From positions 62,001 to 126,000 of IMG/VR virus record IMGVR_UViG_3300012931_000759: DNA of 64,000 nt. One strand, given 5' to 3'. This document shows, piece after piece, positions 43,390 to 51,243 of the stretch. The translations under genes and the position numbers were made by a program. How positions within the stretch are numbered: position 1 is the first letter of the stretch; each line of letters begins with the position of its first letter. Below the pieces are notes generated by a model. That model did not search any database and was not told the origin of the DNA. It worked only from the letters and a program-made list of their open reading frames with translations.

Positions 43390-44130
43390 ATGAAAATATG
43401 CGGAGTTGACGAAGTTGGCTGTTCGGCTATCGCCGGACCGGTCGTGGCGTGCGCAGCCCTGATCGACACGTCCGTTTCCTACATTGATGGTGTGGACGAC
43501 TCGAAGAAGTTGGATCGCCCTGAGCGCGAGAGGCTGGCCCCACTGATCGGCGAGAGGGCCGCCTTCGCCTTCGGGGCTGCCGGTCCGCGGCGGATCGAGA
43601 CGGCCAACATCTACTGGTCGCGCTACATGGCAATGTCGATCGCGGTCCGGAAGCTTCTGCGGCGCGGACTGCGCATCGACTTAGTCCTGGTCGACGGCCT
43701 GCGTGTTGTTCCTGATCTGCCGGACGGCATCAGGCAGGAAGCCAAACCGAAAGCCGACGCCAACTTCTGGGAGGTTGCTTGCGCCTCAATCCTGGCCAAG
43801 GTGTTGCGCGACAACCTGATGTCCTCACTTGCCGACAGACATCCGCATTACGGCTGGTCAACGAACGCCGGATATTACACCCCGGAACACAGGTGGGGAA
43901 TAGCCCTCCATGGTCCGACGCCGCACCATCGGAGGACCTTCAAGCTGTTCCAGTACAGCGAAGCCTCCCACAAACGGTACAGGGGATTCATCGCGAACGG
44001 CGGCACGCCAGAGGAGTTCATTCCGTGGGAGAAGGCGCGGTTGCCGCTCGCAACGGACACGGAGTGCGCCGAGATGCGCCGCGAACTGATCCGCGCTGGC
44101 AGGATCATGCCTGCCAAGGAGCACAAATGA
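43390..44130 (+). CDS. rnhB: ribonuclease HII
   Basis: GVDEVG..AGPVVA, DSKKL, LVDG, KAD..ASILAKV.RD, HRRTF. Confidence 0.92.
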   Translation: MKICGVDEVGCSAIAGPVVACAALIDTSVSYIDGVDDSKKLDRPERERLAPLIGERAAFAFGAAGPRRIETANIYWSRYMAMSIAVRKLLRRGLRIDLVLVDGLRVVPDLPDGIRQEAKPKADANFWEVACASILAKVLRDNLMSSLADRHPHYGWSTNAGYYTPEHRWGIALHGPTPHHRRTFKLFQYSEASHKRYRGFIANGGTPEEFIPWEKARLPLATDTECAEMRRELIRAGRIMPAKEHK

Positions 44131-44312
44131 GCGAAGGCGGATGTCCAATATGCGGAGGGAAGCGCGGTCCGCTTGGCGAGAACAAGTTCTTCCCCTTCTG
44201 CTGTGACCGCTGTAAACTGGTCGACCTCGGCCGCTGGCTCGGCGAGGAGTATTTCATCCCGGAGGACGAGACTCCTTCGGTTCCCGACGACGAAAAGGTA
44301 GCGGACGCATGA
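44127..44312 (+). CDS. yacG: DNA gyrase inhibitor YacG
   Basis: CPICG..FPFCCDRCKLVDLGRWLGEEYFIP with acidic tail; AAGGAG RBS. Confidence 0.88.
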   Translation: MSEGGCPICGGKRGPLGENKFFPFCCDRCKLVDLGRWLGEEYFIPEDETPSVPDDEKVADA

Positions 44313-47145: not shown

Positions 47146-50100
47146 ATGGCAAAGAAGTCAGGTACCTATGAGAATATGAAAGTTCTCAAAGGGTTGGAGG
47201 CCGTTAGGCAAAGACCAGGTATGTATATAGGGGGTTGTGACGATGGCTCCGGCTTCCACCACACCCTGATGGAGGTCCTGGACAACAGTATCGACGAGCA
47301 CATGAATGGTTTCTGCGACAAGATTGTGGTCACGCTCCACAAGGACGGTTCTGCGTCCGTGGAGGACAACGGGCGCGGCATTCCCACGCATTGGATGCCA
47401 ACGGAAAAGAAGACAGCTTTTGAGGTCGCCTTGACCGTCCTACATGCCGGGGGCAAATTCGACAAGGATGCCTACAAATATGCTGGCGGTCTTCATGGGG
47501 TGGGCGTGTCTGCCGTGAACGCCTTGTCGACTTGGCTTGACGCTACGGTTTGGCGTGACGGCAAGGAACATCGGATACATTGCGAACGCGGCAAACGCGT
47601 GGGCGACATCTCCGAAAAGAAGAGTCGCGAGAAGAAAACGGGCACGCTGGTGCGATTCCTGGCCGACAACACCATTTTCCATAATGTCACCGAGTTCTCC
47701 TACGACAGGATTTCCACCAGGTTGAAGGAGCTTTCACACCTGTGTCGTGGTCTGACTATAGAACTGCTGGACGAGCGGACGGGAAACAGCATGCGCTTTG
47801 ATGGTCTTGAGGGCATATGCGGTCTGATGCGGGACATCGCCTCCGGGACACCTGTCGGAGAACCGATCTTCTTTTCCAGCAAGCGCGATTTCATCGTGGT
47901 AGACATTGTGCTCATGTGGACCTCGGAGGATAAAGAGACCTGGCGCTGTTACACTAACAATATCCCCAACATCGACGGAGGAACGCATCTTATGGGATTC
48001 CGGTCGGCGCTGACCAGGACCCTAAACACCTACATTGCGGAAGCCGATATCCCGAAAACCCTGAAGAAGACTTTGTCGGGCGACGATGTCAGGGAAGGGC
48101 TCGCCTATGTGGTGAGTATACGGCACCCGGACGCCAGGTTTAGCTCGCAGACCAAGGAGAAACTGGTTTCCGAGGACGCCAGGATGGCCGTCGAGACTGT
48201 TTTTGCCGACATGTTCCGAACTTGGCTTGATGAACACCCAAATGAGGCCAAAGCTGTGATCCAGCGGTGCGTCCTGGCATCCCAAGCTAGGGAAGCGGCC
48301 AAACGGGCCAGGGAACTGACGAAGCGCAAGACCGACATGGGGGACTCATTCTCGTTGCCAGGCAAACTCTCAGATTGCCAGGAGCGCGATCCCGCTCTCT
48401 GCGAGCTGTTTGTAGTTGAAGGGGATTCTGCAGGCGGTTGTCTTTCTGGCGATACTAAAATCGACTTGGTTGATGGGCGCACTATTACACTAGCAGATCT
48501 TACTAAAGAATATGAAAATGTAGAAAAACTCCAGTATTGTTATTCGATCGATGATGCTGGTCATATTTCCATTGCTCCCATAATTAATCCAAGAATTACT
48601 AAGCGTAAAGCAGAGGTAATTAGACTTGTTTTGGACAACGGTTTGGAGATTGTTTGTACTCCAGAACACAAACTTGCTCTACGTGAGGGTGGTTTTGTTG
48701 AAGCTCAGTTGTCACTTGGAAAAAGTTTGATGCCATTCCATTCTAAATTGTCTGCTGTAGAAGATAGGACTACTATTGCTAGCTATAGGATGGTGTTCGA
48801 TCCAGCGACAGTCAGATGGTTTTTTGTTCATACTTTGTCCGATGCCCATAACTGCGAATTGGACAAATATGATAAATGGATTGCTGGAGCCACCCATGAG
48901 GCGGTTGTAAAATATAACCATAATGTTGTCGCAATATACAAATGTCCTGATAGGATAGATGTTTATGATCTTGAAGTGCCAGGAACCAACAGATTTGCTG
49001 TGTCTGCTGGCATTTTTGTACACAACTCTGCTAAACAAGGTCGTAACCGGCGCAATCAGGCTATCCTACCCTTGAGAGGTAAGGTCCTGAACGTGGAGCG
49101 GTGCGAGTGGAAGAAGCTGCTTGCCAACGAGGAACTAACAACACTTGTCACAGCGATGGGTACCGGCATCGGCAGGCATTTTGACACGGCCGGTCTCCGC
49201 TACCACAAGATCATCATCATGAGCGTCGACGGAGAAGAGCCGACCATCGTGCGCAGGGATGGGGAGATTTCCGTAGTCAGGTTCAAAGATATTGGTAACA
49301 TCGGGTCTTTTGACACGTTGACCATGGATGGGAACGGCGCGGCTATCTGGTCCCATGTGCGGTCGGTTGTTCGACACGAACGCAAAAATATGCCGATGTA
49401 TGGGATTTCTTTGGCATATGGGCGGAAAGTAGTAGTTACTGGCAACCATTCGGTATTTGTAGATCGCGATGGCGTTCCTGCCTTGGTCGAAGCGACCTCC
49501 GTCAAGGAGGGCGATATGATGTATGTCGGTCTGCCAAATCTGCCAGAGACCAACGAACGCATTAACCTGTTCAGACTATGCTGGGCGCAACGGCACAATG
49601 CTAGATACCAGGATCTCATCGTGCGTGGACCTTCGGTGGTTGAAATCTGGAAAGGTCGTATTGCGGAGATGCGGCCCAACATGACGGCAAAACGGGCCAA
49701 GTTGTCGGTGAAAGCGCGTCAATTGTTGCGAACGGTCAGGGTTTCCAAGGGGCTGTCTCTTTTTAAAGTGGCGCAGGTGCTCGGATACAAACAAGCCTGT
49801 AGTATTGCCGATTTCGAATGCGGCAGGACATGCCCACCCATACATGTCCTTGCAAAATGGGAACAGTTTCTTGGAGTTTTGTTACAGTATGAAGAAGCGC
49901 CGTCAACCTTGGATCGCCAATTGTCGAACGCGCACCCATCCAATAGAAATAGAACAAAGGATTGGATACCGCTTTGCGAACTCGGCGAACATGAATTAGA
50001 CATGCTGGGACGCGATGATCATTTGACCATGCGGCATGGAAATGGCTCATACTGTCCTGGGTTCATCGAACCGGATTCTGAATTTGGATTCCTCTTTGGA

Positions 50101-51243
50101 TGGTTTCTTGCGGAGGGTTTCCGTTCTGCTGGACAGTTACAATCCTCCATTGGGTACGGTGATCATGACTATCTGGATGCTCTGCGGACTTTTGCTGTAC
50201 GCCATGGAATAAAATATCGTTTCCATGAGGAAACAGAAGCCTGTGGGCGGTTGGCATTCGGTTGTAAAGCATTCAGATTGGCATTGGAGGCATTGTTTGG
50301 CACATGGAAAACCGCATGCGAGAAGACAATTCCGTCCTGTGTGTTTTCTTGGGTCAAAGATGTCAAGCTCTCTTTCTTGAAGGGTTTGTTTCTTGGCGAC
50401 GGATCTGTCGGACTAAACGGTATTTGTTTTAACACATCCAGTAGGTTTATGGCGCGCCAGCTTCTGTGGTTGTTAGGCGGATGTTCGGTCTTCGCCAGGA
50501 TCGACACGGTTCCTTCCTCTGTTTCGACGATAAGGGGCAAACTAGTTCAGACTGGCGAATCATATCGTGTTGGAATCCATGGATCCGATCTGCTCAAGAT
50601 CGAATCAGTATGGGCCGCTCATTGGAAAGCTGGCAACCTGAGAACATATTTGTGTGAATCGGCGCAAGAAAAGCGCTGCCTGTTTCCATACGGTGCCAAT
50701 GTGTGGCTGGTTCCAGTTCGTAGCTGTGAACAGCTTGAGCAGCAAGTATGTCCAGATACCGTGTATGATTTTGAGGTGCCATCGACGCAGAGATTCTTTT
50801 GCGGGGATGGAATCTTGTGTCACAATACGGATAGCGATGTCGATGGATCGCACATTCGCACACTGCTGTTGACCTTCTTCTTCAGGCAGATGCCGCAGCT
50901 TATCATGGACGGGCGGATCTTTATAGCCCAGCCCCCGTTGTACAGGGTTTCACACAGGGGTCACCAGTACTATCTGAAAGATGATAAGGCCTTAGCCCAA
51001 TTCAAGAAAGAAAGGCGCTTGGATGGCAATTTGGCCAAACAGAGGTTTAAGGGGCTCGGGGAAATGAATCCCGAACAGTTGTGGGAGACGACCATGGATC
51101 CGACCAGGCGGGTCCTTCTGAAGGTCGAGATCACCAATCTCCTGGAGGCCGACCGCATGTTCGGCCTGCTCATGGGTGAACACGTGGATTCAAGGAGGCG
51201 CTTCATCGAGGAAAGCGCCAAGTATGCCACATTGGACATCTGA
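47146..51243 (+). CDS. gyrB: DNA gyrase/type IIA topoisomerase subunit B with two inteins
   Basis: [35 protein letters not shown]|SAKQGR, PLRGK, IM|[18 protein letters not shown]; exteins total 634 aa. Confidence 0.96.
48439..49026 (+). mobile_element. mini-intein 1 in GyrB (196 aa)
   Basis: starts CLSGDT, block B CTPEH, ends VYDLEV..FVHN followed by Ser; lower GC. Confidence 0.93.
49222..50826 (+). mobile_element. intein 2 in GyrB (535 aa) with HTH and LAGLIDADG endonuclease
   Basis: starts [19 protein letters not shown] and [10 protein letters not shown], ends VYDFEV..LCHN followed by Thr. Confidence 0.92.

Follow-up and report, generated by a model that had tools for sequence, protein, structure and literature searches.

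A yacG-gyrB gene pair recurring in a clade of huge phages

The complex of YacG with DNA gyrase from Escherichia coli (PDB accession code: 4TMA; Sengupta & Nagaraja 2008; Vos et al. 2014, PMC4083091) is among the closest described systems to the gene pair considered here. In that complex YacG docks on the TOPRIM domain of the gyrase subunit GyrB, where Met461, Leu509, Phe513, Phe777 and Arg516 line the pocket that takes up its Trp40, and its Ile47 packs against His505, Leu509, Phe777 and Leu780; the mutation W40V abolishes the binding, and mutations of Trp40 or Ile47 abolish or weaken it (PMC4083091). The binding re-orders the quinolone resistance-determining region (QRDR) loop of GyrB (residues 446 to 464), by which DNA is blocked, and this same loop masks the Trp40 pocket when it is ordered (PMC4083091). 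E. coli topoisomerase IV is reported not to be inhibited by YacG, and a recent view regards the bacterial YacG as a protector of gyrase (PMC10886550). We examine a stretch of 64,000 nucleotides (the window, bases 62001 to 126000 of the IMG/VR virus record IMGVR_UViG_3300012931_000759), in which a yacG gene is followed by a gyrB gene of the phage itself. The encoded YacG belongs to the same family as the E. coli protein and shares its Cys4 zinc finger, its Asp36, Trp40 and Ile47-Pro48 and its acidic tail. The E. coli yacG, however, resides in coaE-zapD-yacG, far from gyrB, while the phage yacG is linked to gyrB.

Large phages with a GyrB-like ATPase/TOPRIM subunit are known from T4 (gp39/gp52/gp60) and from Bacillus phage G ("topoisomerase II large subunit"). 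The T4-type phages also encode a GyrA-like cleavage subunit, which the clade described here lacks. Aminocoumarin producers carry a resistant gyrB beside their biosynthetic genes; there, as here, an inhibitor gene stands beside a second, altered copy of the gyrase B subunit, whereas in the phages the inhibitor is a protein, the carrier is viral and the main binding pocket of GyrB is unaltered. Virus-borne YacG-like proteins have been described in prophages (Pseudomonas aeruginosa vB_PaeP-D14I, PMC10449497; Stromatodesulfovibrio provirus SNV1, bioRxiv 10.64898/2026.08.12.739948), for which an inhibition of the host gyrase was proposed from homology alone. Those prophages are small and temperate and have no gyrase subunit of their own, while in the present clade YacG is always coupled to a phage GyrB. 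The small phage proteins Igy of LUZ24 and Gip of CGP3 (PMC10886550) are likewise aimed at the host gyrase, but no sequence relationship ties them to YacG, and reports of any of them alongside a phage gyrase subunit are lacking. Finally, Qnr and MfpA (PMC10886550) are small gyrase binders that combine reversible inhibition with protection; their fold differs from that of YacG. In a literature search, which was not complete, neither an orphan phage GyrB nor the coupling of such a GyrB to YacG turns up, and no paper pairs YacG with a jumbo, huge or mega-phage. The parts are already known (the YacG family, GyrB, inteins), and what appears to be new is a phage GyrB without GyrA that is coupled to YacG.

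The record that contains the window (G000) has 340,392 bp and a CheckV completeness of 84%. It is a tailed phage, being an IMG/VR virus record that encodes a terminase large subunit and tRNAs (seven in the window), and identical DNA is present in wetland metagenomes from two studies. The relatives were gathered by word and profile searches with YacG, and then from the contigs of YacG and GyrB relatives. They include a related record of 441,904 bp (G001, CheckV 100% complete) and four further fragments (G003 to G006). Residues of GyrB are numbered as in E. coli (MG1655 gene), and so are those of YacG unless window numbering is stated. The sequences of the clade represent one lineage, and the signature counts given below are not independent events.

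We consider the linkage of the two genes at the start, as it carries the main finding. In the window 2,834 bp separate the yacG stop from the gyrB start, which agrees with the distance of about 3 kb given by the initial annotation. Among the distinct lineages with upstream sequence, yacG is located 0-4.1 kb upstream of a phage-type gyrB in 10/10 (the distances are listed in Table 1), and these lineages span GyrB identities from 87% down to 52-60%; the contigs P0070, P0072 and P0078, which begin at or just before gyrB, are excluded from this count. The usual gene order is Nuc_deoxyrib_tr-like, HAD_PNKP, a small acidic open reading frame (ORF), (RNase HII), YacG, methylase, (variable) and GyrB, where the variable slot holds RE_NgoPII, genes of no assigned family or a second methylase. 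The intervening genes turn over, and the yacG and gyrB at both ends persist. In the most distant lineage, L019, yacG and gyrB adjoin although the surrounding genes differ, and the stop of the one overlaps the start of the other. Overlaps of this TAATG type are typical of proteins that are produced together. The pairing recurs in every relative in which it can be examined and is not due to chance. We conclude that yacG and gyrB are a conserved two-gene gyrase module, maintained by a clade of huge phages. The co-occurrence of yacG with gyrA and gyrB in phage genomes, which had been suggested as a check and whose lack was to count against the original idea, is thus seen for gyrB in all informative lineages, with abutting genes in one, while no gyrA is found in the records searched for it (G000, G001 and G003 to G006).

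The gyrB of the window is an unspliced frame that contains the domains of the subunit (Pfam HATPase_c, DNA_gyraseB, Toprim and DNA_gyraseB_C) and, in two stretches, the Pfam family Intein_splicing (79.5 bits). The three exteins total 634 amino acids (aa), the length of an intein-free orthologue, and GyrB is predicted to become a single chain once both inteins splice out. In the analysis either the exteins were searched singly or the unspliced ORF was aligned, and the intein-free orthologue of the lineage L003 was used where one chain was needed. The N-extein matches PHROG 543, "DNA topoisomerase II large subunit". The L003 GyrB reaches 905.7 bits on NF011501 (cut-off 796) versus 527-664 bits on the ParE models; on TIGR01059 it scores 809 bits, under the cut-off of 882. 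In a tree rooted on E. coli ParE, the phage-type GyrBs are monophyletic, with the distant L019 included, and they are sister to the insert-bearing GyrBs, with two Firmicutes-type sequences outside. Judged by profiles and tree, the phage protein is a true GyrB and not a ParE.

The nearest cellular GyrBs have 54-57% identity to the phage protein and 797-869 aa, all of them with GyrB_insert, and those that are named carry the labels Pseudomonadota or Myxococcota; the identity to the subunit of phage G is 40.6%. The close set consists of about a dozen proteins of 610-670 aa without the GyrB insert. The part that is lacking is the insert of about 170 aa in the TOPRIM domain, of which 22-55 of 191 columns are occupied in the phage sequences. 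The core residues Glu42, Asn46, Asp73, Gln335, Lys337, Glu424 and Asp498/500/502 are retained in the window and all 15 relatives (16/16), and the ATPase-site positions 76, 78, 109, 110 or 136 vary in three lineages (L015, L017 and P0076). By its catalytic residues, the phage GyrB is predicted to be an active enzyme rather than a decoy. The complete GyrB-like subunit reported earlier is thus borne out in its domains and catalytic residues, although it is not a plain subunit, since two inteins interrupt the ORF.

The YacG of the window had been called a clear member of its family from 61 residues, and this description stands. It matches Pfam PF03884 with 62.4 bits (E 3e-17, cut-off 25.5) and the E. 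coli YacG chains 4TMA_I and 1LV3 with E 1e-8 (phmmer against the PDB), it shares 48% of its residues with E. coli YacG across 52 aa, and the residues for binding are conserved. The four zinc cysteines (CxxC...CxxxC; Cys6, Cys9, Cys25 and Cys29 in window numbering) are invariant in 22 aligned sequences. The protein also retains, again in window numbering, Asp33 (E. coli Asp36), Trp37 (Trp40) and Ile44-Pro45 (Ile47-Pro48). Trp40 is invariant across all 70 YacGs aligned, and the motif DLGRWLGEEYxIP with Asp36, Trp40 and Ile47-Pro48 is, together with the cysteines, common to all phage YacGs. Unlike E. coli YacG, the window protein has no Trp18 and no Lys30, has Phe in place of Arg46, and stays below the NCBIfam equivalog cut-offs (NF001638, 50.7 bits versus 83; NF002362, 47.5 versus 79). 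By these scores it is a family member and not a certified equivalog of E. coli YacG. The tail residue Trp59, which in E. coli docks between the winged-helix domains of GyrA, is also absent, both from the window YacG (tail ...PDDEKVADA) and from most of the clade. This absence is not disqualifying, because E. coli YacG cut after residue 51 still inhibits (PMC4083091).

Position 46 distinguishes the YacGs that are linked to GyrB. While Arg or Lys is found there in 43/56 other YacGs, it is found in 0/10 of the GyrB-linked phage YacGs, which have F, C, F, S, F, S, G, Y, F and F. The AlphaFold2 model of the window YacG has a pLDDT of 70 and one helix at residues 27-38 (window numbering). In a fold search the top PDB entries for this model are 4TMA_J and 4TMA_K (probability 0.92 and 0.89), yet with E 0.011 and a template modelling (TM) score of 0.43-0.50 they are below significance. 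A Shine-Dalgarno sequence AAGGAG stands 7 nt upstream of the yacG ATG, and ATGA overlaps couple the gene to that of RNase HII upstream and to a C5-methylase gene downstream. The pN/pS ratio (nonsynonymous to synonymous polymorphism) of yacG is 0.22-0.39 against 8 relatives, with the synonymous sites near saturation, and yacG is therefore a selected gene. The names of the clusters with the nearest cellular YacGs give only a vague hint at an origin in Myxococcota or Planctomycetota.

No partner subunit accompanies the phage GyrB. The GyrA profiles PF00521 and TIGR01063 (the latter even at E<=1) give no candidate in the 340 kb of G000 or in the complete G001, and PF00521 gives none in the fragments G003 to G006. 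With tblastn, E. coli GyrA has no GyrA match in the whole of G000 and G001, where the control with E. coli GyrB gives 423-588 bits; the weak match that ranks best for GyrA in G000 (E 0.011) belongs to an eCIS_core protein of 161 aa and not to GyrA. The absence is thus based on one complete record and one record of 84%, and more weakly on the four fragments. Searches of G000 and G001 also give no type IA topoisomerase and no pentapeptide-repeat protein of the kind of Qnr and MfpA, of which there is likewise none in the window. Since GyrB alone is unable to cleave DNA and no phage gyrA is found, we infer that the phage GyrB uses the host GyrA, in a hybrid A2(host)B2(phage) gyrase. A foreign GyrB does form an active hybrid gyrase with E. 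coli GyrA in vitro (PMC8448092). The replacement of gyrase by the phage, as it had been envisaged, is consequently not one of the whole enzyme and could only be a swap of the B subunit on the host GyrA.

The next question is whether the phage GyrB can bind YacG. The Trp40 pocket is kept in all phage GyrBs: they have Leu or Met at 461 and show no change at 505, 509, 513, 516, 517, 777 and 780, with a Phe at 780 in P0072 as the sole exception. The window has His505, Leu509, Phe513, Arg516, Phe777 and Leu780, while Tyr515 is replaced by Phe. E. coli ParE, in comparison, belongs to the topoisomerase that YacG is reported not to inhibit (PMC10886550), and it differs at 461, 513, 515, 516, 517 and 777. 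By this pocket criterion the phage GyrB looks competent to bind YacG.

The surroundings of the pocket have changed. A position counts as a GyrB signature if at least 90% of 108 cellular relatives share its residue and no more than one phage sequence has that cellular residue. Seven signature positions are located in the C-terminal half, and 5/7 are in the set formed by the QRDR loop and the direct contacts of YacG (I450V, A456C/G/N, R457E and S464N in the loop, Y515F as a direct contact). This clustering has a Fisher p of 3e-4 when the C-terminal half is considered and of 0.008 for the whole protein. At position 457 all cellular sequences have Arg (108/108) and all phage sequences Glu (15/15, or 16 with L019). 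In addition, the phage GyrBs have K or R in place of D/E459, W in place of F458 in 12/15, and a deletion of one residue at Asp481, the partner of YacG Lys30.

Combining the linkage, the pocket and the changes around it, we explore what the pair might do. Our tentative preference, which we regard as somewhat less likely than not, is for a co-evolved YacG/GyrB pair in which YacG is a brake or a safeguard on the hybrid of phage GyrB and host GyrA. The phage GyrB would replace host GyrB on the host GyrA, and the phage YacG would bind its own GyrB and probably that of the host too. Judged by homology, the phage YacG should block the binding of DNA by gyrase, and it could serve as a reversible brake or safeguard by which the orphan subunit or the hybrid is kept off DNA when unwanted; alternatively, it may shield the orphan subunit or the hybrid enzyme from gyrase poisons. 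We favor the brake or safeguard because the pocket is intact, both partners have changed, the two genes of L019 are translationally coupled, YacG is viewed as a protector, and there is a pentapeptide-repeat protector in L017. This protector is a 143-aa protein of the Qnr/MfpA class (L017 7-438) encoded 1.3 kb upstream of yacG, which gives that locus two candidate gyrase modulators beside GyrB. The initial annotation also suggested that the phage enzyme is timed by YacG, and this accords with the intact pocket and the loss of Arg46 at least as well as the inhibition of host gyrase and its replacement does. We do not think that the phage GyrB is YacG-proof.

Several points count against a brake or safeguard. 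It is not obviously useful to make a brake alongside its own target, and changes of GyrB that concentrate in the loop responsive to YacG are also expected of a resistant target. The residues of the pocket are largely retained in the Staphylococcus-type GyrB too, so their conservation is no proof of binding. As Arg46 is not among the listed contacts of 4TMA, the statement that both partners have changed is an argument from proximity. A complex prediction for residues 395-633 of the L003 GyrB with its own YacG and Zn has a score of 0.00, with an uncertain fold of the partner, and weighs on neither side of the question of binding. Moreover, with a single phage lineage the signatures may stem from one ancestral event.

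The amended form of the initial annotation's model comes next: YacG would block the gyrase that contains host GyrB, and an insensitive phage GyrB would take over the host GyrA. Gyrase activity would then pass to a phage-controlled hybrid, by means of an inhibitor and a resistant copy of its target. We find this possible but doubtful, and have the same doubt about its strong form, where the rebuilt loop (R457E, F458W and D459K) masks or alters the YacG site and makes GyrB immune to both host and phage YacG, so that the host GyrA pool works only with the phage B subunit and inhibitor and target become an "orthogonalised" pair. The substitutions do cluster in the loop that YacG remodels and in the direct contact (the five signature changes together with D459K/R and the one-residue deletion at Asp481), and F458W places a Trp in the very loop that masks the Trp40 pocket when ordered (PMC4083091). 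The pocket itself, however, is the dominant binding determinant and is unchanged, though it is altered in E. coli ParE. The loop also contacts DNA, and its changes could reflect a modified phage DNA, given the methylase, dCMP deaminase and deoxyribosyltransferase-like genes nearby. Strict co-inheritance is what is expected of a poison and its immune target, and the phage YacGs that occur without GyrB, in the prophages (PMC10449497) and in other viral records (L004, which is classed as a provirus, L020 and L021), indicate that such proteins can target the host gyrase. Against an ordinary cellular GyrB as the target, the loss of Arg46, a residue retained by most cellular YacGs, would nevertheless be odd, and the gain from a selective inhibition is unclear, as the hybrid would act on the host DNA too.

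It is also conceivable, though unlikely, that YacG does nothing but inhibit the host gyrase, and that its proximity to gyrB results from a shared syntenic block for DNA metabolism. The stretch of the window from 31 to 52 kb is indeed a co-directional block of genes for nucleotide and DNA metabolism which is syntenic across relatives, and methylase and restriction genes put 2-4 kb between yacG and gyrB in most relatives. These intervening genes (RE_NgoPII, the second methylase, HNH and ORFs of no known family) are the ones that turn over, while the pair is always retained, and the abutting genes of L019 stand amid different surroundings. For a phage that needs gyrase with its own GyrB, an indiscriminate inhibitor would besides be self-harming.

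A very unlikely alternative is that the phage GyrB, locked by YacG, titrates the host GyrA into a complex that does not bind DNA and so turns gyrase off without DNA breaks. The orphan state of GyrB, and the action of YacG, which closes gyrase and prevents its binding to DNA (PMC4083091), would suit such a sink; the catalytic residues of ATPase and TOPRIM, which it does not need, are conserved down to 52-60% identity, and most phage YacGs are without the Trp59 that docks on GyrA. We give least credence to a role outside gyrase, where the zinc finger would act together with RNase HII or the methylase, to which it is translationally coupled, for although yacG overlaps both neighbors, misses the equivalog cut-offs and recurs beside RNase HII (L011, L016, L017, L019, L053 and L054), RNase HII is not next to it in L003, L006, L012 and L055, gyrB is always present, and the conserved YacG residues are precisely those that bind GyrB.

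Gyrase is essential, a major antibiotic target and often hit by proteins of phages and plasmids, and small molecules are already being pursued against the TOPRIM pocket (PMC4083091, PMC10886550). If YacG and GyrB are a matched set, the clade provides a natural experiment on the specificity of YacG, in which the changes in the GyrB loop can be set against YacG position 46. If inhibition of the host enzyme with replacement of its subunit is true, it would be a new takeover strategy, the exchange of a subunit in an essential host enzyme. Under either reading, huge phages would tune DNA topology by way of borrowed host regulators. The intein-free L003 orthologue and the ten natural pairs of YacG and GyrB sequences are a resource for biochemistry.

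We turn our attention to the records outside the clade. A YacG-like match is present in only 3/50,697 records of the isolate-phage database, none of them a relative of this clade, and the same database has no close relative. Its top GyrB matches look for the most part like contigs of bacteria that were filed as phage, with two rows labelled Salmonella enterica and several UNVERIFIED_ORG. The "phage" matches H1, H2, H5, H9 and H12-H19, with GyrB/YacG of about 50% identity, look bacterial and are not counted; examples are the UNVERIFIED_ORG records of Listeria and Staphylococcus and the contigs of Acinetobacter phage MD-2021a with gyrB and yacG. PHROGs v4 contains no YacG family.

Table 1. Features of the yacG-gyrB locus. 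Coordinates are those of the window, except in the rows named for a relative, where they are those of the relative.
Feature	Coordinates	Strand	Description
Small acidic ORF	43144..43374	+	76 aa, very acidic; precedes RNase HII or yacG in most relatives
RNase HII gene	43390..44130	+	Pfam RNase_HII E 9e-32; stop overlaps yacG start (ATGA)
yacG	44127..44312	+	61 aa, zinc finger, gyrase-inhibitor YacG family
C5 cytosine DNA methyltransferase	44309..45496	+	Pfam DNA_methylase E 2e-49; start overlaps yacG stop (ATGA)
Second-methyltransferase remnant	45519..45866	+	115 aa; matches only residues 192-260 of the 337-aa L003 enzyme (64% identity)
Cys-rich HNH-like endonuclease ORF	46084..47142	+	PHROG HNH endonuclease/endonuclease families, E 1e-13 to 1e-15
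gyrB	47146..51243	+	single open frame, 1365 aa, unspliced
gyrB N-extein	47146..48438	+	aa 1-431; ATPase and transducer domains, ends ...EGDSAGG; Pfam HATPase_c, DNA_gyraseB
Intein 1	48439..49026	+	196-aa mini-intein; Cys1 CLSGDT start, VHN end, +1 Ser; after E. coli Gly430
gyrB middle extein	49027..49221	+	aa 628-692; QRDR loop 49072-49128, changes I450V, A456C, R457E, F458W, D459K, S464N
Intein 2	49222..50826	+	535 aa, LAGLIDADG homing-endonuclease domain; Ser1 SVDGEE start, CHN end, +1 Thr; between IIIM and TDSDVDG
gyrB C-extein	50827..51243	+	aa 1228-1365; DxD motif, remainder of Trp40 pocket, GyrB C-terminal domain
560-aa protein gene	51253-52935		begins 9 nt after gyrB; 553-568 aa in closer relatives
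gyrB region, L006 (intein-bearing)	14033-16366		
gyrB region, L007 (intein-bearing)	14033-17236		
gyrB region, L019 (intein-bearing)	10162-12981		
yacG-gyrB gap, window			2.8 kb
yacG-gyrB gap, L003			3.2 kb
yacG-gyrB gap, L006-L008			3.9 kb
yacG-gyrB gap, L015/L018			4.1 kb
yacG-gyrB gap, L016			1.8 kb
yacG-gyrB gap, L017			3.1 kb
yacG-gyrB gap, L053			3.0 kb
yacG-gyrB gap, L054			2.0 kb
yacG-gyrB gap, L055			3.8 kb
yacG-gyrB gap, L019			0 kb, stop/start overlap TAATG

The two inteins differ in their distribution. The site between GDSAGG and S (after Gly430) is occupied by an intein of 196 aa in the window, 142 aa in L006, 432 aa in L007 and 283 aa in L019, and it is empty in the other 12 aligned members of the clade. 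The lineages L006 and L007 have the same YacG and inteins of unequal size. The site between M496 and T497 is filled in the window only, by the larger intein, which LAGLIDADG_3 matches.

The genes around the module complete the picture of the locus. An acidic ORF of 71-76 aa is found at the equivalent position in L003, L006-L010, L011, L012, L016 and L054. The ORF of the window has no Pfam or PHROG match and no usable Atlas match; it may or may not be part of the gyrase module, and a role like that of a DNA mimic is only a guess. The C5-methylase is also located downstream of yacG in L003, L006-L012 and L053-L055, and there are relatives with RE_NgoPII and a second C5-methylase between yacG and gyrB. 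In the window the HNH-like ORF lies in a patch with a GC content of 0.49 versus about 0.56 around it, and relatives are without this ORF at that position; it probably inserted before gyrB as a mobile element. The region 45519-47142 looks like a decayed restriction-modification unit that was replaced by the mobile endonuclease. Scans for promoters and terminators give fewer sites in this DNA than in shuffled sequence and are uninformative on the limits of operons.

Upstream of the module, four relatives have a dGTP_diPhyd_N (MazZ-like) gene (L006 7042-7485, L012 5201-5605, L053 3274-3714 and L054 243-881), accompanied by a dCMP deaminase, a nucleoside deoxyribosyltransferase-like gene, a uracil-DNA glycosylase (UDG) and several methylases. 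This set of nucleotide genes hints that the phage DNA is modified, and such a modification could also account for the changes in the GyrB loop that contacts DNA.

Downstream of gyrB, the 560-aa protein has repeated GDDPRL-type motifs and weak matches to DUF5907 and to a minor tail protein. It would seem to be a structural protein, and its place within a block for DNA metabolism is odd. We considered it as a hidden A-like subunit and rejected it, as it has only these weak matches and as other genes occupy its place in L015-L017. It is followed at 52951-54608 by an IS607-like insertion, with a serine-recombinase ORF (145 aa, without the first 30 or so positions of the Resolvase profile) and then a TnpB/Cas12f-like protein (406 aa). 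This insertion splits the 560-aa gene from a 1384-aa gene; the two are neighbors in L003 and L006-L008.

Elsewhere in the window, seven tRNA genes (Glu, Val, Ile-TAT, Arg, Leu, Ser and Pro) are located on the + strand at 3641-16217. The tRNA-Ile(TAT) has 91 nt, which is long for a class I tRNA and may be due to an intron or a miscall. The region 31646-33439 encodes a fusion of a NaeI-like endonuclease with a NUDIX domain (362 aa) and, after it, a short release-factor-like protein (232 aa), which matches only the last 94 or so of the 194 positions of the PCRF profile and then the RF-1 domain. The relatives also have the release-factor-like gene, and in addition a serpin.

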